Source: Octopus sinensis (Eukaryota). From it: a DNA stretch of 11,410 nt. A program made the position numbers and the translations under genes. This document shows positions 1 through 11,410 of the stretch, piece after piece. Location of the stretch: NCBI RefSeq assembly GCF_006345805.1, contig NW_021827010.1:1-11410 (forward strand), given 5' to 3'. The stretch's first letter is position 1. Every line of letters starts with the position of its first letter. Below the pieces are notes generated by a model. That model ran no database searches, was not told the DNA's origin, and saw only the letters and a program-made list of their open reading frames with translations.

Positions 1-22
1 AGCTTTCTGCTAATCCCAACAG
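1..22 (+). other. Possible 3' end of an exon (5' splice donor at 23)
   Basis: CCAACAG|GTCAGT at 22/23 fits the donor consensus. Only 22 nt of the putative exon are in the window, so product and frame cannot be assigned. Confidence 0.35.
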
Positions 23-284
23 GTCAGTAAAACATATTCTCGCCTTGTACTTAAAATATTCTGAGATGTATAAAAAAGCCATTCTAATTTTTGCTGTCAA
101 AAGGCTGTATATATATACCAAAGATTGTATATATATACATGTAATGTGACAATTTGCGACAACCAATAATTAACGCAACCAATTCCCAATAAATATTTGT
201 TTTATCCTTTTCTGCCAAATTTTCCCAAACATTCTCATCACACTATTGAACTTCTCTGTTACCAAACACTATATCTATACATGT

Positions 285-508
285 AATGTGACAATTATGT
301 ATAAAAAAACATTTTTGAATTCATAATATCCAATGTGACAATTATGTAAAAACCTTTTTGAATGCATAATACTCAATGTGACAATATGTAAAAACCTTTT
401 TGAATGCATAATACTCAATGTGACAATTATGTAAAAACCTTTTTGAATGCATAATACTCAATGTGACAATTATGTAAAAAACTTTTTTTGAACCCATATT
501 ATTCAATG
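285..508. repeat. ~43-bp minisatellite, about 5 copies
   Basis: Unit AATGTGACAATTATGTAAAAACCTTTTTGAATGCATAATACTC. Units start at 285, 332, 375, 417 and 460 (spacings 47, 43, 42, 43; last unit about 45). Central copies are nearly identical and outer copies are degenerate. It explains ORF 342..533. Confidence 0.95.
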
Positions 509-640
509 TTTCCTTAAATGTAACTTTTGACAATCTTTTACCAAAGAGTGAAACCGGTTAAGTAAATAAACATCGTTTAAATTGCATTTTCAAACCTTTT
601 TTCTTATATAATCCCACTCGTGCGATACCCCACAACTCAA

Positions 641-646
<6 letters not shown>

Positions 647-694
<48 letters not shown>
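647..694. repeat. (TA)n microsatellite
   Basis: Perfect TA run of about 24 units. Confidence 0.98.
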
Positions 695-697
<3 letters not shown>

Positions 698-923
698 GAG
701 AAAAATGCAACAAGAATGGATTATTAGTTTCAGTACAATTGTTTCATACAAAGACAAGCTTTATTAAAAGCTGCAAATATTGCAACAAATACAAGTGTCC
801 CGTACTCATCAGCCAAAACACATATGAGTTCTCCAAGCATCCTAGTGGGTGAGGCTACACTCATGAAGTATCGGATGTTAGGAAGTTCATGTCAGAACAG
901 ACAATGCTTTTTTCTCGTTTATA
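691..923 (-). mobile_element. 233-bp unit bounded by 19-bp inverted repeats and containing a hammerhead ribozyme (Penelope terminal repeat / retrozyme-like or MITE-like)
   Basis: Left arm 691-709 is TATAAACGAGAAAAATGCA. The right arm 905-923, reverse-complemented, is TATAAACGAGAAAAAAGCA (18/19). Both ends finish in TA. Confidence 0.55.
727..819 (-). ncRNA. Type I hammerhead ribozyme (minimal, palindromic helix III), probably partly decayed
   Basis: Minus strand reads GTTTTGG-CTGATGA-GTACGGGACA-(39 nt)-TGTCTTTGTAT-GAAA-CAATTGT-A-CTGAAAC. The core boxes CUGAUGA (806-812), GAAA (742-745) and UH = UA (735-734) are intact and in the right order. Helix I is GUUUUGG/CUGAAAC (7 pairs, 2 G.U). Helix II is GUAC/GUAU, extended by GG-GACA/UGUC-U-UU. 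Helix III is the palindrome ACAAUUGU. Confidence 0.8.
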
Positions 924-1034
924 ATCACCCCACATTATTGTATGGTTAATACCATATAGTTTTCTGGTGCATCTAAGTTAAGTACCACATTCAAGTGAAT
1001 TCAATAGAACTCACTTGAATCTTAATTGCTTTTA

Positions 1035-1044
1035 TTATATATAT

Positions 1045-1135
<91 letters not shown>

Positions 1136-1155
1136 TAGATAGGTAGATAGATATA
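1035..1155. repeat. (TA)n / (TAGA)n compound microsatellite
   Basis: Visible directly in the sequence. Confidence 0.95.
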
Positions 1156-1177
1156 TGCATATATCTCTTCTTTATGG

Positions 1178-1211
1178 GTTCAGCCGGATGCTGAGGCCAT
1201 GCTGGTGCACC
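1178..1211 (-). mobile_element. Short remnant of the 3' end of the SINE family seen at 4986-5385
   Basis: GTTCAGCCGGATGCTGAGGCCATGCTGGTGCACC resembles the reverse complement of 5330-5365 (TTTCAGCCATTTGACTGCAGCCATGCTAGAACACC). Confidence 0.5.
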
Positions 1212-1324
1212 ATGTAAGTATATGTATGCAATTGTATGTGTATGATGATGATGATGATATATATATATATATATATATCTTACGCATTTTACAACCTAAC
1301 AGTTGTTAGGCGCATGGCTCATGA

Positions 1325-1657
1325 AGGCGCATGGCTCAGTGGTTAGAGCGTCGAGCTACGATCGTGAGGTGTGAGCTCGAATCCCAGACCGGGCTGCGTG
1401 TTGTGTTCTTGAGCAAGGCACTTTTTCACGTTGCTCCAGTTCACTCAGCTGTAGAAATGAGTTGCGACGTCACTGGTGCCAAGCTGTATCGACCTTTGTC
1501 TTTTCCTTGGATAACACAGGTGGCGTGGAGAGGGGAGGCTGGTATGCATGGGCGACTGCTGGTCTTCCATAAACAACCTTGCCCGGACTTGTGTCTAGGA
1601 GGGTAACTTTCTAGGTGCAATCCCATGGTCATCCATGACCGAAGGGGGTCTTTACCC
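1325..1657 (+). mobile_element. tRNA-derived SINE, full length (family A)
   Basis: Pol III A box TGGCTCAGTGG at 1332-1342 and B-box-like GCTCGAATCC at 1375-1384. CORE/V-type central motif GTTGTGTTCTTGAGCAAGGCACTTT. It ends in a (TA)n tail. A second copy lies inverted at 3001-3292. Confidence 0.9.
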
Positions 1658-1690
1658 TTATATATATATATATATATATAGATGCATATA

Positions 1691-1867
1691 TCATCATCAT
1701 CATCATTCAACGTCCATTTTCCATACTGCTATGGGTTAGATGGTCTGACCGGAGCTGGTAAGGCTGGGGGTGCCACACCAGGTTCCATTGTCTGTTCTGA
1801 CATGCACTTCCTAACATCAACCACTTTACAGAGTCCACTAGGTGATTTTTATGTGACACCAGCACCA
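1691..1867 (-). mobile_element. 3' tail of a non-LTR element (LINE 3' UTR or LINE-tailed SINE) ending in (ATG)n, with an internal deletion
   Basis: Colinear with 10905-11148 and 7844-7890: (CAT)n-AACGTCCATTTTCCAT...CTTCCTAAC..CAACCACT. RTE-clade assignment is from recollection only. Confidence 0.75.
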
Positions 1868-1899
1868 GTATTAATTCTGTTGTGGTGGATAGGCCATAT

Positions 1900-2125
1900 A
1901 CGTGTGTGTGTCTGTGCATGTATATATGTATATATATGTATGTATATTTACACACACATTAACACAAATATATGTACACACTAAATACACATACTTAAAC
2001 AATAAAAAAATATATATATGGATGTGTGTATATGCATGTATGTATACATTGTAGTTGTCATCATCGTCGTCATCATTATTAACATCATCATCATCATCAT
2101 CGTCGTCATCATCATCATCATCCCC
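1900..2125. repeat. Degenerate (TG/TA)n followed by (CAT/CGT)n microsatellites
   Basis: Visible directly. It explains ORFs 1682..1984, 1707..1955 (in part) and 2018..2257. Confidence 0.9.
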
Positions 2126-2336
2126 ACCATCGTTATTGTAATCTCTTCTCTACGAAGTTGTTACAGCCATGACTACAATTCAAGTCATACAGTATCTTGT
2201 CACTCACCTCAATCTTTCGTCCTTTCATTTACGAGATCCAAACATCCTGAAACATAGCCACATCTTTCCCTTTTCATATCTCCTCTTTACTCTTTCTCTA
2301 CTTCAAATCCAATACATTAATGAAATTAAATGTAGT

Positions 2337-2459
2337 GTCATTAATTTCTATAATGAGTCTTAATTAGTAAGGCTATACGATAAATATCTTTTATAAGTGT
2401 CATTGCTAATTATTATCTTACAAAATTATAGTTTTGTCTAAGTGGACAAAAATGATCTT
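2337..2459 (+). repeat. Unclassified old dispersed repeat, inverted partner of 5677-6018
   Basis: 2401-2459 matches the reverse complement of 5677-5735 at 50/59 with no gaps. Similarity continues over 2337-2400 once the MITE at 5757-5975 is removed from the partner. Confidence 0.75.
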
Positions 2460-2463
2460 GAAA

Positions 2464-2985
2464 TTTAAAGATGACAAAAAGAATTTTATAGATAATCCAT
2501 CGTTTAAGTTAATACATATATCCAAAAGTAATTTAAATGTAGTGTGTAAAAGTATCTTAGATGTTACTATTTTTAGAATTATACAAACAACCAATTTACC
2601 ATTATTGAATAGCAGTATTTCACATATTAATTGGTTCATTGGTATCAGCTATAAGCATCTTTATAAATTTATCTAGTTTGATATCATTGAATTTCATCCT
2701 TGAATAACTAAATCTGTGCTCAAAAAGTATTAGTTTCCATCAAAAATAATATTCCAGTCAGTGATTCCGATAACAAAATATTCATGCATGCAAGAAGACC
2801 ATTGCTTTCTCTCTATAACTATCTATTGGTAAAGAAGAATTACACTAATTATTTTATAATAATGATGGGTTCCTTAGAATCTGAGGAAATTTGTGAGATC
2901 ATTGGTCTTTCAATTTTCCTATGATGCCCGAGTTTAATAATTTACAGTGTAGCTTATATCAAGATAGTGGGTTTGTTTATTACAT
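2464..2985 (+). pseudogene. Decayed Penelope-like element (PLE) reverse transcriptase fragment
   Basis: Three frames joined by two frameshifts read FKDDKKNFIDNPSFKLIHISKSNLNVVCKSILD...HINWFIGISYKHLYKFI*FDIIEFHP*ITK / DNKIFMHARRPLL...VKKNYTNIFIIMMGSLESEEICEIIGLSI / FNNLQCSLYQDSGFVY. These follow the PLE RT motif order LKDHKxNFxNNPxCRLINP, FDIxEFYPSI, HARKxLL, MGSxDxAExCELxG, GLYRDDGL. The catalytic YRDD reads YQDS (2957-2968). The fragment is cut off by the SINE at 3001. Confidence 0.85.
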
Positions 2986-3000
2986 AACATATATATAAAG

Positions 3001-3306
3001 AGGGTAAAGACCTCCTTCTGTCATGAATGACCATGAGATTGCACTTAGAAAGCTACTCTCCCAACTACAAGTCTGGGCAAAGTTGTTTATGTAAGACCAG
3101 CTTCCCTTCTTCATTTTACCAATGTTACCCAAGGGAAAGATAAAGGCCAATACAGCTTGGCAACAGTGACATCACAGCTGATTTCAACAGCTGAGTGAAC
3201 TGGTTTAACGTGAAATAAAGTGTCTTGCTCAAGAACACAACACACAACCCAGTCTGGGAATCAAACTCACTGCCTCATGATTCTGAGCCCAAGATTTTGA
3301 GCCCAA
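3001..3306 (-). mobile_element. tRNA-derived SINE family A, 5'-truncated, inverted copy
   Basis: The reverse complement aligns along 1351-1657 (e.g. GTTGTGTTCTTGAGCAAGACACTTT and GGTCTTTACCCT). It lacks the A box and has its TA tail at about 2987-2998. Confidence 0.9.
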
Positions 3307-3404
3307 TATATATGGATGCCTGATAATTAGATTTGGAAAATATTCCTTTGAGTTATTCTAAAGATCTAGTGCCACAACAGACACAACATCATTAATAGAC
3401 ACGT

Positions 3405-3506
3405 GCTAACAAAGCCACTGAGTCTGACTATGTTGCTTCAATTGCACTAAAACTATGTGACTCAGACCTGGCCCCTATCCTTGCCAGCCTTTTCAGTCCC
3501 TCAGTC
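3405..3506 (+). pseudogene. LINE ORF2 remnant (CR1/Jockey-type pre-RT domain)
   Basis: Translates to ANKATESDYVASIALKLCDSDLAPILASLFSPSV, resembling the conserved KAxGPDGIxxxxLKxCxxxLAPxLxxLFxxS motif just upstream of LINE RT domain 1. Confidence 0.65.
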
Positions 3507-3525
3507 TGTCTAATGATTGTATCTC

Positions 3526-3536
3526 CATCTCTCCCT

Positions 3537-3580
<44 letters not shown>

Positions 3581-4066
3581 CAGTTTATTACTCTGGTCAG
3601 AATCAGTCAGCTGTGTAGGTATGGTTGTGTGAGTGGGTGACTGTATTGAATATATATGTATGTGTATTTGTATATATGTGTATATGTCTATCTGTCTGTA
3701 TGTATGTATGTTTGTGTCTTTGTACATTTGTGTGGATGGATGTCTGTGTGTATGTGTAGCTGTATTAGTTCCAGCTCTCTACACCCTGGGTTCACTTGTC
3801 TATATGTATGTGTGTGCACAGCTATGTGTGTATGAGTGTGTGTGTGTATTTGTGTATATGTGTCTGAGTATGTGTCAGTATGTCTGTGAACATACATATG
3901 TATTTATGTGTATATGTGAGTCTGTGTGTGTGTGAGAATGTGTATTTGTGTATGTATCTGTATGTGTAGTGTATTCATATGCATTTGTGTGTATGAATCT
4001 GTGTGTGCACGTGTGTGTGTGTGTGTGTTGTGTGTGTGTGTGTGTGTGCACGTGTATGTGTGTGTT
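3526..4066. repeat. (CT)n followed by long degenerate (TG/TA)n low-complexity tract
   Basis: Visible directly. It explains ORFs 3428..3727, 3633..3935 and 3688..3897. Confidence 0.92.
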
Positions 4067-4246
4067 AAATACTCATCAGAAATAGTCTCCGAACCAGTTT
4101 GATGTTAAGCTGTTTATATCTTTTGACAGCTTGTCATGTTGGTGTGGTGAGAGAGTGTAATTATTTGAGAAATACTAAAGTGAAAAAGGATTGGTCAACT
4201 TGAGACAGATGACACCTCACACTTGCAATCTCTTCTTCATAATCCC

Positions 4247-4290
4247 AGCAGCAGCAGCAGCAGCAGCAGCAATGACAGCAGCAACAACAG
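4247..4290. repeat. (CAG)n microsatellite
   Basis: About 8 perfect CAG units followed by degenerate CAG/CAA. Confidence 0.92.
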
Positions 4291-4504
4291 AAAAATAACA
4301 TTTCAAAATTAAGAAAATTTGTATTTTAATCATTCAAGATTTGATCTACAGCAAAAGGTTAAAGGTAATGTTGCTAGAAATATGTTGTAGTTATACCCAA
4401 AGACCAAGTTTTCAGCAACAATGATCATAATAGTAATATTGGTTTTTGACATTCTTATGAACAAATTTTTAATTATAGATCTCCCGACGAATTCACAGAA
4501 TTGT

Positions 4505-4636
4505 TAAAGCATCAGATAGAATACTTCGTGGTATGTTCCGACTCACTACATTCTGAGATCAAATCTCACTGAGATTAAATTTGCCCTCACTCATTGTGGG
4601 GCTAATAAAATGAGTACCTATCCAGAGTAGTAGACT
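4505..4636 (+). mobile_element. Degenerate SINE fragment
   Basis: TACATTCTGAGATCAAATCTCACTGAGATTAAATTTGCCCTCACTCATTGTGGGGCTAATAAAATGAGTACC resembles a SINE body I recall from octopus (TTCTGAGTTCAAAT...TTTGCCTTTCATCCTTTCGGGGTCGATAAAATAAGTACC). Recognition only. Confidence 0.55.
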
Positions 4637-4985
4637 GGTGAAATCCTTGAGGGATTTTGTTTCTAATCACTGCATTCAGAGTCAAATTCTACCTAGGTAC
4701 CTTAAAACTACCCTCACCAACATTCACACTTAATGTGGCCAGTAATAGAAGTCCCTGAAATAAAGGCCAATATCAAATAAGATGATGCTGGATGGAGTCA
4801 AGACTTGTGCTTGTTTGGTGAATGAATAGTAGATTTAGACAACAAACTGGCAAAGTTGTTATAGCTGTAACTATCAGAAGAGGTATCTAGGGGCACCAAA
4901 GAGTTTTAGAAATCATAATTTGTTAATTTAAAAAATCAACACAAATTCTTGAATGTCTTGAAAACAAAATGTGTGTCAACTTTTA

Positions 4986-5385
4986 CAGGAGTGGCTGTGT
5001 GGTAAGTAGCTTGCTTACGAACCACATGGTTATGGGTTCTGTCCCACTGCGTGGCACTTTGGGCAAGTGTCTTCTACTTAAGCCTCAGGCCGACCAAAGC
5101 CTTGCGAGTGGATTTGGTAGATGGAAACTGAAAGAAGCCCATTGTATATATGTATATGTATATATATATATGTGTGTGTGTGTCTGTATTTGTCCCCCCA
5201 ACATCGCTTGACAACTGATGCTGGTGTGTTTATGTCCCTGTAACTTAGTGGTTCGGCAAAAGAGACTGATAGAATAAGTACTAGGCTTACAAAGAATAAA
5301 TCCTGGGGTCGATTTGTTTGACTAAAGACGGTGTTCTAGCATGGCTGCAGTCAAATGGCTGAAACAAGTAAAAGAGTGAAGAGAG
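4986..5385 (+). mobile_element. tRNA-derived SINE, family B, with an internal TA/TG microsatellite
   Basis: A box TGGCTGTGTGG at 4992-5002 and B-box-like GGTTCTGTCCC at 5036-5046. CORE-like TTTGGGCAAGTGTCTTCT motif. The 3' part is GATAGAATAAGTACTAGG...CAGTCAAATGGCTGAAACAAGTAAAAGAG. Confidence 0.88.
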
Positions 5386-5676
5386 TAATAGTTTTCTATA
5401 TTTTTATCTAAATTTAAAGCCAAATTTTTAAAATAAATTCATGCTAGGTACACCAATAATTATTTTGTTTGACTTTTAGTTTACCAGCAAATGGAAAACA
5501 TTGACAAACACTGTGATAAAGCATAGTGTCTCAGAAAGTGTCTACCAGTATTAGTTCCTGTTTCCAGTGTTCTCTGTTTAAATTCCATCAAAGTAAATGT
5601 TGCTTTTTATCCTTTCAGAATCCATAAATATAGAACCAATCCATGCCAGAAGATCAGTGGAATTTTTGTCTGTTTT

Positions 5677-6018
5677 AAGATCATTGTTTTCCACTTAGAC
5701 ATAGCTTAAATTTTGCATGAAAATAATTAGCAATGATACATGAAAAATATATTCAACTCTTTAGCATTTACACTAACCATATACCAACAATATATTCCAT
5801 CTGTTTTATGTTCAAATTGGCCAGATCCAGGCACTCACACCTATCCTATAATGTTATTCTACATAAAATAATCACATCATTGAAATCTCAAAGATATGAG
5901 ATAATGCATGATTAATTCAAAACAATGTGAATCAATAAGCATTACATCTGATAGAATAATCTGAACACTAAAGGATTAACATGTAGACTTACCAATTAAT
6001 ACTTATACAAATTAATGG
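5677..6018 (-). repeat. Unclassified old dispersed repeat (partner of 2337-2459), interrupted by a MITE
   Basis: Segments 5677-5756 and 5976-6018 join into a sequence colinear with 2337-2459. Confidence 0.72.
5757..5975. mobile_element. piggyBac-type MITE (219 bp, TTAA target-site duplication)
   Basis: Flanked by TCAA (5753-5756, degenerate) and TTAA (5976-5979). Termini CTCTTTAGCATTTA and TGAACACTAAAGGA are imperfect TIRs around a CCCTTTAGCATTCA consensus. The paralogous empty site at about 2381 has a single ATAA. Confidence 0.8.
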
Positions 6019-6211
6019 CAGAACACTAAATTTTTGATTTTTAATCCCACACGTTTCATTGGATAAAATGCATCAGTTAGGATCTGGCAAAGAACGATAA
6101 GCTTGATAAACTCGAGAAGATCTTCAACAAGTGTCCAATGATGTTGGCTTACTACTCTTAATGTCAACACATTGCTGGCAGAAAAGTATGTATGAAGACT
6201 TTGAAGTTCTG

Positions 6212-6464
6212 TTTTCTTCTCTCTCTCCTCTCTCCCCTCTCCTTCTCTCTCTCCCTTCCTCTCTCTCTCTCTTCTTCTTCCCTTTCTCTCTCTCCTCTCT
6301 CTCTCTCTCCTCTCTCCTTTCTCGTCGCTCTCTCTTCTCTCCTCCTTTCTCATCCTCTCTCTCTCTCCTTTCCTCTTCCTCTCTTCTCCCTTTCTCTCTC
6401 CTCTCTCTCTCCTCCTCCTCTCTCTCCTCATCTCTCTCTCGCTCTCTCCTCTTTCTCTCTCTCA
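6212..6464. repeat. CT-rich polypyrimidine/polypurine tract (~250 bp)
   Basis: Degenerate (CT)n/(CCT)n. It explains ORFs 6012..6431, 6124..6465, 6131..6469 and 6192..6473. Confidence 0.97.
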
Positions 6465-6579
6465 TGTAGTTGATTATTTAACATGTACCAATTTTAACAA
6501 ATCCTGAAAGCAAGAATGGCTAAGTAGGAATTCTACAGGGGGGATTGGACACAACAATAAAACTAAATGATAATATTAA

Positions 6580-6800
6580 CTCTTTCATTACCAACCCGGC
6601 TGAAATCGGCTCTGGCTCTGTAGTACAAATGTCTCGTTTTCATAAGTTCTGAATAAAAATCTTCCACCAAACCTTAGTCACAATTTATGTTCCTAACACT
6701 AGCTTAATGATGACTAAGTTACTTTACTAAATTCTTTGTTATATCTAAAGTAACTGAAAGAAACACGGAACATATCAACAGAAATACAGTAACGAAAGGG
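6580..6800. mobile_element. piggyBac-type MITE (221 bp, TTAA target-site duplication)
   Basis: TTAA at 6576-6579 and 6801-6804. Left TIR CTCTTTCATTAC versus right TIR reverse complement CCCTTTCGTTAC (10/12). TTAA plus CCC...GGG ends is the piggyBac signature. Confidence 0.85.
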
Positions 6801-6827
6801 TTAAAACACCTACTATACAACTGGCAC

Positions 6828-6915
6828 AATAAAACAATTGGCCACATTATTTCTGAGTGCCCAGTCCTAGCTAAGTCCAAGTAGACCCATTGAAAGGATC
6901 AAGCCTGTAGCTATG
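6828..6915 (+). pseudogene. Remnant of the CCHC zinc-knuckle region of an RLE-type (R4/Dong-like) non-LTR retrotransposon
   Basis: Translates to NKTIGHIISECPVLAKSK*TH*KDQACSY, compared with the family pattern ETIxHIxSGCPxLAxxEYxxRHDxVxxY. His at 6843-6845 and Cys at 6858-6860. Confidence 0.55.
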
Positions 6916-7404
6916 AGCCGTATGATCATGTCTTCAATCTGTTAGATAAAAATTGGAGCAAGACAACATAGTGAGGTAATGATATATGACAAAAACGTTA
7001 TATAGTGTTCACTGCATCTACCTGGTATATATTATGCAATTGTTAAATCAGTTAGTGTCATTTGCATAATATATTAATTTCTGTCAATTTATGTGTATTC
7101 TATTAAACATCATAACAGCGTTGAATAAAATTTTTATTGCTTAGTATTAACATTACTCAATATTTGCTGTTTGTTGCATAATTAATTAATTGACTACATT
7201 GCCAACAGTAACACTATTATGCAAATCAGACAAAGTGATTTATCAAAGTCATAAAAAGTAATGACTATAAATGATAATTAGAAAATATAAAATCTCTGTC
7301 TGCTTGCAATAGAAATGAAACCACATGTGAGACATCTTTGGTGACAATTCCAATCAGAGAGGAAACTGGTCTCACTAATACACCCCCACCCCCATGTGTC
7401 CACA

Positions 7405-7424
7405 GAGAGAGAGAGAGAGAGAGA
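7405..7424. repeat. (GA)n microsatellite
   Basis: Visible directly. Confidence 0.9.
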
Positions 7425-7534
7425 CAAAAAAGGTATTTGTTTACAATTATCAGCTTGTACTGGATTACACATCGCAGTGATGGCTAAAATTAGTATTGTT
7501 TATACATTGGATATACCATACTTTATACTTTAGC

Positions 7535-7777
7535 ACACGCATGCACACAAACACACACAAACGCATACATGTACACACTCACACACACACACATGCGTGT
7601 GTGCTTATAAGAAGTTCCTATTTATATTTTTCATATTACAAGAGCAAGCTCAACATACGTTTAAGTGTATAGATGTTTGTATGAATGTAGAAACCTATTG
7701 TCTCTCCCTCCTACTCTCTCTCATTCTCTCTGTCTCTCTCGCCATATATACATACATAAATATATATATAGACATAA

Positions 7778-7824
<47 letters not shown>

Positions 7825-8005
7825 CATCTGTACAATATATATTATCATCATCATTTTACATCAATGCTTCCATGCTGGCATGGGTTGGACCATACATATG
7901 TATATTTATGTTTGCAATACATATACATGCATACACACACACTTACACACACACACACATATATATATGCACATACACACACACACATGCACACATACAC
8001 ATACA
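7535..8005. repeat. Compound (CA)n/(CT)n/(TA)n low-complexity region
   Basis: Visible directly. It explains ORFs 7597..8025, 7665..8009 and 7820..8062. Confidence 0.9.
7844..7890 (-). mobile_element. Very short 3'-terminal fragment of the (ATG)n-tailed non-LTR family
   Basis: ATCATCATCATTTTACATCAATGCTTCCATGCTGGCATGGGTTGGAC matches the start of 10905-10950 and 1691-1730. Confidence 0.7.
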
Positions 8006-8114
8006 ATAAAAAACATCAATGTTAATAAAAAAAAATGTAGAAAGTGTTGGAATGAGAATTAGCAAATGAAGATGAATGAGTGCCAAGAAGAATGGTAAAG
8101 CCAGGGGTGGCAGC

Positions 8115-8236
8115 ACACACCACCACCTTCACCACCATCACTGCCACCATCATCACCACCAACACCACCACCATGAGCACTAGTAGAACTCCTACCAACA
8201 ATATCACCGCAACCATCACCACCGCCACCACTAGAA

Positions 8237-8267
<31 letters not shown>

Positions 8268-8362
8268 CAGGAGCTGTATGTAGCACACTCACCTCCACCA
8301 CCATCTTCTCCATCTACCTCCACCATTACCAGTGCCTTATTCACCACCGTCACCACCACCAT
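8115..8362. repeat. Degenerate (CAC)n/(CAT)n trinucleotide repeat
   Basis: Visible directly. It explains ORFs 8022..8288, 8059..8313 and 8080..8283. Confidence 0.92.
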
Positions 8363-8419
8363 GGCAATTACTACGGAGTTTCACTGTTGCTTAACTCACA
8401 AGACATCTGGCATTGTGAG

Positions 8420-9155
8420 ACATACACACACATACATACAGGTGCACATGCACTCACACACATACACAGCAATTGATTCAAACACATTCACATAGACACA
8501 CATATATAAGCACATATACACATACACTCATACTGGCAAACATATATACATGCATTCACAGTTACACACATTTATGGTCAGTTATAGGCTTGGAGATGCA
8601 GAAATGCATCAGATAACATAATAACATACATACACACACAACTGTATCACATACATGTATATATGCACATGCAGACACACACATACATACAGACACATAG
8701 ATATACAGGCAAATATGTCTTTCAACTTACATATATACACATATAAGCAAATAATCACATATATACACATGCAAACACACATAGGTATATTACACATCCA
8801 CTTACACCCCATGAATACACACATACAATCATACTAGCATCTACATACATATACATACATCTACATATACATATACATTCATTTATGTACATATTTACAT
8901 TCACATTACACACATATATACATACACACCAGATACAGTTTATAAAAAATCGTATAAAGAAAAATAGTTGAAATAGCTTTTGGTTAGAAATATAGCCACA
9001 TTATACTCAACATACTATGTATATTTATGTATACATGTGCATATATCTATCTATTGTATGCATTTATGTGCGTGTTTGAGTGTTTGCGTGTATCTATGTT
9101 TGTTTGTCTACATGTATGTGCCTATGTCTGTATTTCTTTGTCTATGCGTATTTAT
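8420..9155. repeat. CA/TA-rich tract (8420-8930) followed by a TG/TA-rich tract (9015-9155)
   Basis: Visible directly. It explains ORFs 8609..8824, 8655..8837, 8980..9219 and 9027..9251. Confidence 0.88.
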
Positions 9156-9392
9156 AAAGGGATGCTACAGTCTAGCTGTCATCTCACCCGTTGTCCCAAC
9201 CTCCTCACTGAATGTGTAAACCCTACTACAAACAGTTTCTTTTTCTTTTAGTAGAAAACTATGTTGATGTAGATTAAACAGATGTTACTGCTGCAGAATA
9301 TCAACATAGGGAGCTTTTAATGAATTTCTTTTTCTTTTTCTTCCTCATAATTAATTCTTGTTCTTTTACTGATTTCTCCCTCCTGCATTAAG

Positions 9393-9476
9393 GTATAAAA
9401 AGCAAGCCCCAGACAAAGTGTCTCACAATGCTTAACTATTTAGTTTGCTGTTATATTGCTATCTGTATATGTTATG
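9393..9476 (+). CDS. Candidate exon (84 nt); CDS from ATG 9428 encodes a signal-peptide-like MLNYLVCCYIAICICY
   Basis: A long pyrimidine tract (9353-9386) precedes AG at 9391-9392, and a perfect donor G|GTAAGT lies at 9476/9477. The frame is open throughout (GIKSKPQTKCLTMLNYLVCCYIAICICY). The ATG has A at -3 and the exon ends in phase 1. Confidence 0.55.
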
Positions 9477-9749
9477 GTAAGTAACCTAGAAGTGTCCAGT
9501 ACAAATTTATACAGGATGTGTATAAAAATTTCTAATTATCAAATGTTAGTTATATATGTGAAGTAACCTGTAGTGGTGCACTCTTTACCTGTTTGGTAAA
9601 GACAAGAAATAAAATATGAGTTGAAGGTAGATTCTAGGGATGAATACATAAGAAAAAAGTTGTGAGGCTGAAATGAATTTCAAGGAATTATGTACAATGA
9701 CATGTTATTTGAAATAGAAAAGTTGCATGTGTGTAGGCATGCACATGCT

Positions 9750-9780
9750 TGTGTTTGTGTGTGTGTGTGTGTGTGTGTTG

Positions 9781-9812
<32 letters not shown>
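9750..9812. repeat. (TG)n microsatellite
   Basis: Visible directly. Confidence 0.95.
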
Positions 9813-9814
<2 letters not shown>

Positions 9815-10320
9815 GCACACAACTAGCAACCCAGTTTGTCCGTATACTACAGGATTTCTAGTATAGATACCAAACAATTTGAAAATAATTATAAGATTTT
9901 AAAATTTTATGAAGCTAAGGAGTAGGTGTCTTTAAAGGTGTCTATGACGAATGAGATTTCATAATTTTCTGTAGTGCAAAGGTTGCACTGTTATTTGTTT
10001 TCTATATATAATATATCCCACTAGAAGTTTTTCTGTTTAAAATCATACTGTTTGAGGATACTTTTCAATTCTAAAATGTAGCTGGAGAATGAAGTTAAAT
10101 TACTTTTGATGGAATTACAAAATGAGTGAATATGTTGATTAAAGCAAAACTTAAAAGATTTAGCTGTAAGGCCAATATATAGTCTAGCCAAATAAAAAGT
10201 TTGTGCAGTATATTGGTTAACTATGTTCTTGACAAAACATTTAGGAATGAAAGGGGAATTACTTTGGTTTTTGTAATTAATTATTAGGATTAGGGTAAAT
10301 ACTACTTTGTTTTAATTTAG

Positions 10321-10430
10321 CTGGGATAGTTCTGGGTGAAGTTAGGTGTGGCAGAATAAGAGAAATTAATGGCAGTTATATTACAAATTCTATAATATAT
10401 ACATTGGAGAGGGACTGTCTTTTTACATGA
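10321..10430 (+). CDS. Candidate next exon: end of the signal peptide plus a CUB-like N-terminal segment, ending at TGA 10428-10430 (possible donor at 10454/10455)
   Basis: Acceptor CTACTTTGTTTTAATTTAG at 10302-10320. Phase 1 is the only long open frame (AGIVLGEVRCGRIREINGSYITNSIIYTLERDCLFT*) and matches the phase of the previous exon. The other phases stop within 6 codons. Confidence 0.5.
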
Positions 10431-10904
10431 AATACAGAAACCTTTAGTTACAAGGTTTGCTACTGCTAAATTTAACAGTAAAATGAACCAATAATTAGAC
10501 CTTTTTCTATATCTATAGCTAGCTAATCTAGTTACAAGTTTAATGCTAGATATTTTCTCTGGAGAACTGCATATATGTATATACATGCTGATATAATTTT
10601 ATGTTTATAATTAGAAAATATAATACATTTGTTCATTAGCAGAAATACCAAAGGGGTTAAATGATGATTTTTTTCTAAAATATTATTGATATTATTAGCA
10701 TAGATTTTGAAAGTTTATGTATTAATTCAAATTTATATTTCCATTGCATTATGGGCTGTATAAATAAAAGCTAGCAAGATTAAGGGCCACCTCTAAGAAG
10801 CTAACAGTGTTAAGGTTTGTTTGAATGGTAGTTTATTAAACATACCCAAATATATACATATATATTTATATTTATACACATGCATATATGTACATATATG
10901 CAAA

Positions 10905-11148
10905 TCATCATCATCGTTTAATGTCCGCTTTCCATGCTAGTGTGGGCTGGACGATTTGACTGAGGTCTGGCAAACCAGATGGTGGAACCAGACTCCAATC
11001 TGATCTGGCAGAGTTTCTACTGCTGGATGCCCTTCCTAACAACAACCACTCTGAGAGTGTAGTGGGTGCTTTTACGTGCCACCGGCATGAGGGCCAGTCA
11101 GGTAGTTCTGGCAATGGCCACACTCAAATGGTGCTTTATATGTGCCAC
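10905..11148 (-). mobile_element. 3' end of a non-LTR element (LINE 3' UTR or LINE-tailed SINE) with (ATG)n tail
   Basis: Longest copy of the family seen at 1691-1867 and 7844-7890. It has an internal direct repeat GGTGCTTTT-ACGTGCCAC (about 11065-11081) / GGTGCTTTATATGTGCCAC (11130-11148). It explains ORF 10911..11123. Confidence 0.8.
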
Positions 11149-11335
11149 ATATATATACATATATATATGTATATATGTATATATGTATATATATGTATGT
11201 GTATATATATATATATAATATAATATATATACATATTATACACAGACGTGTGTGTGTGTGAGGAAATGTACATATATATATATATAACACACACACACAC
11301 ATATGTCTATATATGCGTGTAAACAGATACAAACA
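11149..11335. repeat. TA/TG/CA compound microsatellite
   Basis: Visible directly. It explains ORF 11072..11368. Confidence 0.92.
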
Positions 11336-11410
11336 CATAAAGTAAGAAAAAAATGAAAGAGAGAGCAAGCCATGAATAATGGATGCTGAAAATTTAATAT
11401 TTAATGTGAC

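Follow-up and report, generated by a model that had tools for sequence, protein, structure and literature searches.

On the minus strand of an 11,410-nt stretch of Octopus sinensis DNA (contig NW_021827010.1, positions 1 to 11,410; hereafter the window), positions 727-819 spell a complete type I hammerhead ribozyme motif. On balance we favour the view that this is a genuine but decayed relic, a solitary and mutationally weakened type I hammerhead lying near the 3' end of a repeat-derived insertion of about 340 nt in a (TA)n tract. It would most likely derive from a Penelope-like element truncated at its 5' side, of which it would be the 3' end or pseudo-LTR, or else from a retrozyme-like non-autonomous relative. 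The full core in type I order, a unique match to a motif descriptor, a chance rate of about 4e-5 per window and a palindromic helix III beyond what the descriptor demanded speak for a relic. The lack of an Rfam match, the G.U at 10.1-11.1, the 60-nt helix II, a minimum free energy (MFE) structure that beats the hammerhead fold and the failure of the searches to find homologues speak against it.

Organization of the motif

Read directly, the minus strand from 819 to 727 is GUUUUGG-CUGAUGA-(60-nt helix II domain)-GAAA-C-AAUU-G-U-A/CUGAAAC, with the slash at the predicted cut. Its parts are as follows.

813-819, minus strand: 5' strand of helix I, GUUUUGG, in a 7-bp pairing with 733-727
806-812, minus strand: core box CUGAUGA (C3-A9), an exact match
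746-805, minus strand: 60-nt helix II domain, with the base GUAC (805-802)/GUAU (749-746) followed by an irregular stem with internal hairpins
742-745, minus strand: core GAAA (G12 A13 A14 A15.1), read directly from the sequence
735-742, minus strand: helix III ACAAUUGU, read directly, with A15.1-U16.1, C15.2-G16.2 and the loop AAUU
733-734, minus strand: scissile bond, predicted by standard hammerhead numbering
727-733, minus strand: 3' strand of helix I, CUGAAAC, pairing with 819-813

A preliminary description of this DNA had listed the elements of a complete type I core, and every one of them was found base for base. C3U4G5A6N7G8A9, G12A13A14 and the A15.1-U16.1 pair are all present, and position 17 is H (not G), with U735 and A734 at the end of the core. 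Three helices surround the core and helix I is open-ended, which is the type I topology. In total there are 7 bp in helix I, 4 bp at the base of helix II and 2 bp in the palindromic helix III; 13/13 of these pairs can still form and every invariant core base is intact. Standard numbering predicts a cut between A17 (734) and C1.1 (733), after the GUA triplet 736-734, in agreement with the position given earlier. The reading of ACAAUUGU as a perfect 8-nt palindrome also stands. This sequence is self-complementary, and A-C-[AAUU]-G-U has the 1-2 bp and the small palindromic loop of the dimer-requiring animal type I hammerheads (PMC4209133, PMC7229834).

Other features depart from the class. Helix I contains two adjacent wobbles, U815.G731 and G814.U732, and the base of helix II opens with a third, G10.1(805).U11.1(746), before three Watson-Crick pairs. 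The closing pair G10.1-C11.1, which has been described as highly conserved (PMC4209133), is thus replaced by the G805.U746 wobble. A helix II of 4 bp whose short loop 2 touches loop 1 is not present: there are 60 nt between A9 and G12 and no defined loop 1, and a helix II domain of this size is outside the described animal type I range (4 bp in canonical motifs, 6-8 bp in Penelope-type minimal ones). The features of membership are split: the core, the topology and the palindromic helix III are those of a type I hammerhead, and against them stand the wobble at 10.1-11.1, the low Rfam score, the missing tandem context and the size of helix II. Helix II may extend as GUACGGGACA/UGUCUUUGUAU with one bulge, and given this extension the earlier count of 39 nt for loop II holds. 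Both of the sub-hairpins proposed within that loop exist, at 786-770 and 772-757, but they share 3 nt (772-770) and so are alternatives that cannot both be fully formed.

To our knowledge, C11.1pG12 is a CpG built into every canonical hammerhead gene. The window as a whole is strongly CpG-depleted (CpG o/e 0.30, TpG 1.45, CpA 1.37), and a change of C11.1pG12 to U11.1pG12 is therefore an expected path of decay. The preliminary description had attributed each of the three wobbles to one CpG C>T change, and such an origin is plausible. What does not survive is the use of the three CpG sites as independent evidence, which we dropped: the geometry of the wobbles largely forces the following G's, since U11.1 always precedes the invariant G12, and since a tandem 5'-UG-3'/3'-GU-5' puts a G after both U's by construction. 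A CpG origin is thus no evidence on its own. Reverting the three putative C>T changes improves the hammerhead-compatible fold from -14.2 to -21.4 kcal/mol, but the MFE of the reverted sequence is still lower (-24.2).

Chance expectation

The type I descriptor used here specified CUGANGA, GAAA, a contiguous helix I and a helix II whose two strands close a span of no more than 80 nt. On the helix III side it specified A15.1-U16.1 and one further pair, a loop of 0-6 nt and H17. Across both strands of the window the 727-819 site is the only match, even when the descriptor is relaxed to at least 4 bp in helix I and at least 3 in helix II. Randomized and simulated sequences gave the following numbers of hits.

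4000 dinucleotide shuffles of the window, helix I at least 5 and helix II at least 4: 0 hits
4000 dinucleotide shuffles of the window, helix I at least 4 and helix II at least 3: 4 hits
300 Mb of first-order Markov sequence, both strands, helix I at least 6 and helix II at least 4: 3 hits
300 Mb of first-order Markov sequence, both strands, helix I at least 7 and helix II at least 4: 0 hits

Within the window the site is more than chance. The simulated rate corresponds to about 4e-5 hits per window. For a genome the size of that of octopus (2.8 Gb) this means about 10. It is the combination alone that is unusual: each core box taken singly occurs at its chance frequency, and CTGATGA, for example, has two sites in the window where 2.2 would be expected, so that this box alone is not significant.

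The same figures leave room for a second explanation, that AT/TG-rich, old repeat-derived DNA has met a permissive descriptor and was never a ribozyme. We regard such a chance look-alike as possible but doubtful. About 10 matches of this quality per 2.8-Gb genome, with a helix II span of up to 80 nt, mean that a genome-wide scan would surface some. Three G.U in 13 pairs is close to the share expected from random pairing, and the ordinary frequency of the single boxes agrees with this explanation, as do the missing Rfam hammerhead match, the unexceptional fold of the 93-nt segment, the failure of the searches made to find homologues and the lack of retroelement hallmarks in the window. On the other side is the rate of about 4e-5 for any one window. 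The palindromic tetraloop, the U at position 7, the 7-bp helix I and the long stem of helix II all exceed what the descriptor demanded, and adding the tetraloop, which lies outside the descriptor, makes chance matches about 16-fold fewer, or <1 per genome. True hammerhead-bearing elements are moreover abundant in the lineage (PMC13282606, PMC8967140, PMC4209133). Penelope-like elements are among the abundant repeats of octopus and bobtail squid, and those of O. vulgaris show an old expansion at a JC distance of about 0.2 with a few hundred recent insertions (PMC13282606, PMC8967140). Because these elements are abundant in octopus and their expansion is old, decayed hammerhead fragments should far outnumber chance motifs. 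We favour a genuine relic because such fragments would be expected in thousands, against about one or fewer full-featured chance motifs per genome.

Predicted folding and activity

In the 93-nt segment the hammerhead-compatible fold has -14.2 kcal/mol and the MFE structure -18.6, so that the former is 4.4 kcal/mol worse. In the MFE structure GAUGAGUACGGG base-pairs with U-rich sequence lying downstream of it; this buries the core and sequesters GAUGAG. Compared with shuffled sequences, the stability of the segment is not unusual (z -1.14). When the helix II domain is folded alone it reaches -13.5 kcal/mol (z -1.88), a value equalled or bettered by 6/200 shuffles, so that its stability is mildly unusual. 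A longer segment of 233 nt, bracketed by an inverted repeat, has z -3.84, which is mostly owed to the inverted repeat itself. In its MFE structure a different element would bury part of the core.

824-829, minus strand: ACUCAU, the complement of AUGAGU (809-804)

The pairing that buries the core thus differs between the two predictions, being a hairpin in the 93-nt MFE structure and ACUCAU/AUGAGU in the 233-nt one. The predicted MFE structure of a dimer includes an 8-bp helix III duplex formed through ACAAUUGU.

A currently functional ribozyme would belong to an extant octopod family of type I hammerheads that act as dimers, have an enlarged and branched helix II and cleave when two transcripts pair through ACAAUUGU. 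This is consistent with the 13 pairs that can all form, with the intact invariant core bases, with the 8-bp helix III of the predicted dimer and with the recently active Penelope-like insertions in O. vulgaris (PMC13282606). We nevertheless think it improbable. The G10.1.U11.1 wobble and the competing folds that bury the core weigh against it, a partner copy is absent within 11.4 kb, and identical or near-identical copies were not found in the window, in JGI metagenomes, in 45 kb of cephalopod DNA or through protein-space proxies. Penelope-type minimal motifs are also poor cleavers in vitro, even as dimers (PMC4209133). As a relic, the copy at 727-819 would be expected to be inactive or at best feebly active, because it lacks a nearby partner, has only a G.U pair at 10.1-11.1 and contains two further wobbles, both in helix I.

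Searches for related sequences

The comparison with Rfam hammerhead models that the preliminary description had proposed went against it: no Rfam 15 hammerhead family matched at its gathering score, at E<=10 on positions 680-870 or at E<=1 on the window. This lowers the case for membership but does not exclude it, since a covariance model would lose many bits over 60 nt inserted into helix II. The matches obtained were sub-threshold miRNA families (mir-297, mir-466 and others), driven by TA/TG microsatellites, and a weak box C/D snoRNA.

Box C/D snoRNAs have a C box, RUGAUGA, and a D box, CUGA, which are joined by a directly flanking terminal stem. That UGAUGA (811-806) and CUGA (733-730) are such boxes is suggested by snR69 as the best Rfam match (728-816, minus strand, spanning the whole model, 20.3 bits, E 0.22 with 191 nt searched), by a typical length of about 90 nt and by the location of UGAUGA and CUGA close to the 5' and 3' ends, respectively, but it is highly improbable and we rejected it on box geometry. 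The putative C box starts with C where a purine would be expected. The boxes have no terminal stem directly beside them, G813/G814 being unable to pair with A729/A728, and the CUGA bases take part in Watson-Crick or wobble pairs of helix I. There is no internal CUGA D' box and there are no D'/C' boxes, and the interior is a stable hairpin and not an open guide. The 20.3 bits are also far below the gathering score of 50, with no such match at E<=1 window-wide.

The preliminary description had invoked Penelope-like elements and animal retrozymes, and the contexts typical of these families were not found in the 11.4 kb. There is no second hammerhead or tandem unit, and no pseudo-LTR pair or RT/GIY-YIG remnant was found; nor is the motif part of a tandem array in which every repeat of about 150-450 bp has its own hammerhead. 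Stops make up about 6% of codons in every frame checked (212-231 stops per frame), and a six-frame query with 697-1032 returned no protein at E<=1 among 5.8 billion. The stop density and the empty six-frame query argue against coding remnants; a 5'-truncated copy would lack an ORF. Likewise, the protein collection held no record of the 44-aa ORF that reads through the motif, nor of ten ORFs of the window, and chimeric six-frame translated queries with two other repeats of the window, the SINE-like repeat and repeat family X described below, had no protein matches.

At the nucleotide level, JGI metagenomes were scanned for the pattern TGATGAGTAC-N30-60-GAAACAATTGTA. The 5 loci that it returned were set aside as chance, as none has a C before UGAUGA and none has the helices. 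Cephalopod DNA was sampled through two rhodopsin loci, one of 24.3 kb from O. vulgaris and one of 20.9 kb from a squid-like ENA contig; these 45 kb contain no hammerhead and no copy of the 695-1035 stretch. In the literature we found no description of a hammerhead ribozyme in octopus or other cephalopods.

Genomic surroundings

The motif lies within a stretch that is free of microsatellites and flanked by them on both sides.

695-1035, minus strand: 341-nt non-microsatellite stretch containing the motif, bounded by (TA)24 (647-694) on one side and by a TA-rich array (1036-1164) on the other
874-906, minus strand: 33-nt block common to repeat family X, 97% identical to 1786-1818, in hammerhead-strand orientation (blastn E 8e-11)
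691-709, no strand: left arm of a 19-nt inverted repeat that brackets the motif, 95% complementary to the right arm
905-923, no strand: right arm of the inverted repeat, partner of 691-709

On the minus strand the hammerhead is 33 nt from the 3' end of the 341-nt stretch, that is, from the (TA)24 tract. The stretch has the appearance of having inserted into a (TA)n tract, a context that is not specific, since other repeats in the window also abut TA microsatellites. Elsewhere in the window 695-1035 recurs for the 33-nt block alone. We also considered the hammerhead part as a homologue of the 3' parts of repeat X and rejected this, as the local alignment scores are no better than those of shuffled sequences.

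The arms of the inverted repeat are TATAAACGAGAAAAATGCA and TGCTTTTTTCTCGTTTATA, with TA/TATA outside both. A third, degenerate copy of the arm motif, GATTATATAAGAAAAAAGG (minus strand), is present in direct orientation at about 594-616, beyond the (TA)24 tract, and the window has no further copy. A MITE is a derivative of a TIR DNA transposon, with terminal inverted repeats, a target-site duplication and multiple genomic copies. The 19-nt inverted repeat could be MITE-like termini, or it could reflect the inverted or partial copies that are typical of Penelope-like insertions.

Two palindromes were also noted in this part of the window. One is near-perfect, with 14-nt arms ATTCAAGTGAATTC and GAACTCACTTGAAT and a 4-nt spacer, at 989-1020 on the 5' edge (minus strand) of the 341-nt stretch. 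The other, TATGGT-ATTA-ACCATA, is smaller and lies near 940-955.

The rest of the window is rich in repeats. Repeat family X has plus-strand copies at 1693 to about 1900 and at 10904 to about 11145, about 65-75% identical, which begin with (ATC)n and then TTYAAYGTCC..TTTCCAT and end at a TA/TG microsatellite. The SINE-like repeat occupies 1331-1400 (plus strand) and continues to about 1655, with an inverted partial copy at 3001-3215; the copies are 81-86% complementary. By eye its head looks tRNA-derived, in that TGGCTCAGTGG ... GAGCTCGAATCCC resemble A and B boxes; neither ARAGORN nor Rfam called a tRNA there. Neither of these repeats was found in the 45 kb of cephalopod DNA. The interspersed repeat at 4995-5377 does have relatives in that sample, at 81-82% identity over 356-403 nt, at two Octopus vulgaris sites in both orientations (OX597836.1, positions 19342-19744 and 20156-20507 of the 24-kb locus L006). 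At 285-487 there is a 43-nt tandem repeat, AATGTGACAATTATGTAAAAACCTTTTTGAATGCATAATACTC, in 4.7 copies with 93% matches, and related motifs, AATGTGACAATT, occur at 128-154 and 270-296. A CT-rich low-complexity tract of 246 nt at 6218-6463, with periods 2, 65 and 73, gives rise in several frames to long spurious ORFs, which are rich in Glu/Arg on the minus strand and in Ser/Leu on the plus strand. The microsatellite load of the window is very high overall, with TA, TG/CA, CT, ATC/CAT and CAG arrays (36 TRF rows).

Relationship to known hammerhead ribozymes

The type I hammerheads of metazoan retrozymes and satellites (newt satellite 2, axolotl HHR_Amex, Schistosoma Sm-alpha, and mussel and coral retrozymes; PMC7229834) have the same topology and an identical core. 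They also share with the octopus site a helix I of 6-7 bp, an AT-rich host sequence and a helix III of 1-2 bp closed by a palindromic tetraloop, which points to dimers as the acting form (PMC7229834). However, they are embedded in tandemly repeated units of about 150-450 bp, present as anything between dimers and large multimers, whereas the octopus site is a single copy with no tandem unit. Their helix II has 4 bp and a short loop that contacts loop 1, in place of a 60-nt domain with a G.U at its base.

Type I hammerheads are present in the pseudo-LTRs of canonical Penelope-like elements, close to the 3' end, and have a helix III that is short and often palindromic (PMC4209133). These minimal motifs (Rfam Hammerhead_1 clan) share with the octopus site the type I organization, the short or palindromic helix III and a larger-than-usual helix II. 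Both also lie near the 3' end of an inserted element, a putative one in octopus, and some Penelope-like clades favour microsatellite targets, including (TA)n (PMC8557442). The differences lie first in helix II, which in Penelope-like motifs has 6-8 bp, usually one more base, left unpaired, after A9 and a G10.1-C11.1 pair that is conserved, as against a 60-nt domain and a G.U here. Helix I is shorter in the Penelope-like motifs, 4-5 bp compared with 7 bp. Finally, the octopus site has no RT/GIY-YIG ORF, no pseudo-LTR pair and no second hammerhead.

Proposed mechanism and implications

In hammerhead chemistry G12 acts as the general base and G8 as the general acid. If the motif descends from an active parent element, helices I and II would have docked in its RNA round the CUGAUGA/GAAA core. 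A helix III of 2 bp would be too weak alone, and two RNAs or tandem units may have paired through ACAAUUGU to form an 8-bp helix III. The 2'-OH of A17 (A734) would then attack its 3' phosphate (to C733), which would cut the chain between 734 and 733 and leave a 2',3'-cyclic phosphate and a 5'-OH. Multimeric transcripts of the parent element would thereby be trimmed to unit length.

A more elaborate scenario can also be imagined, in which octopods have an undescribed type I family whose helix II has grown into a branched domain of about 60 nt. It would be carried by a short non-autonomous retroelement that targets (TA)n, a Penelope-dependent 'retrozyme-like SINE', with dimer cleavage still taking place through ACAAUUGU, and the locus would be a slightly decayed member. 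We offer this as speculation and consider it unlikely.

As a decayed relic, the more probable reading, this single copy carries little biological weight alone. If real, it would be nothing out of the ordinary, a further relic of an animal type I hammerhead, with the octopod host and the enlarged helix II as its twists. If genuine, it would also illustrate how much helix II may be enlarged in such a motif and give a first pointer to hammerhead-bearing retroelements in octopods. The motif provides a concrete query for the parent family, and with it one may ask whether the Penelope-like elements or retrozyme-like circular RNAs of octopus use such a ribozyme.
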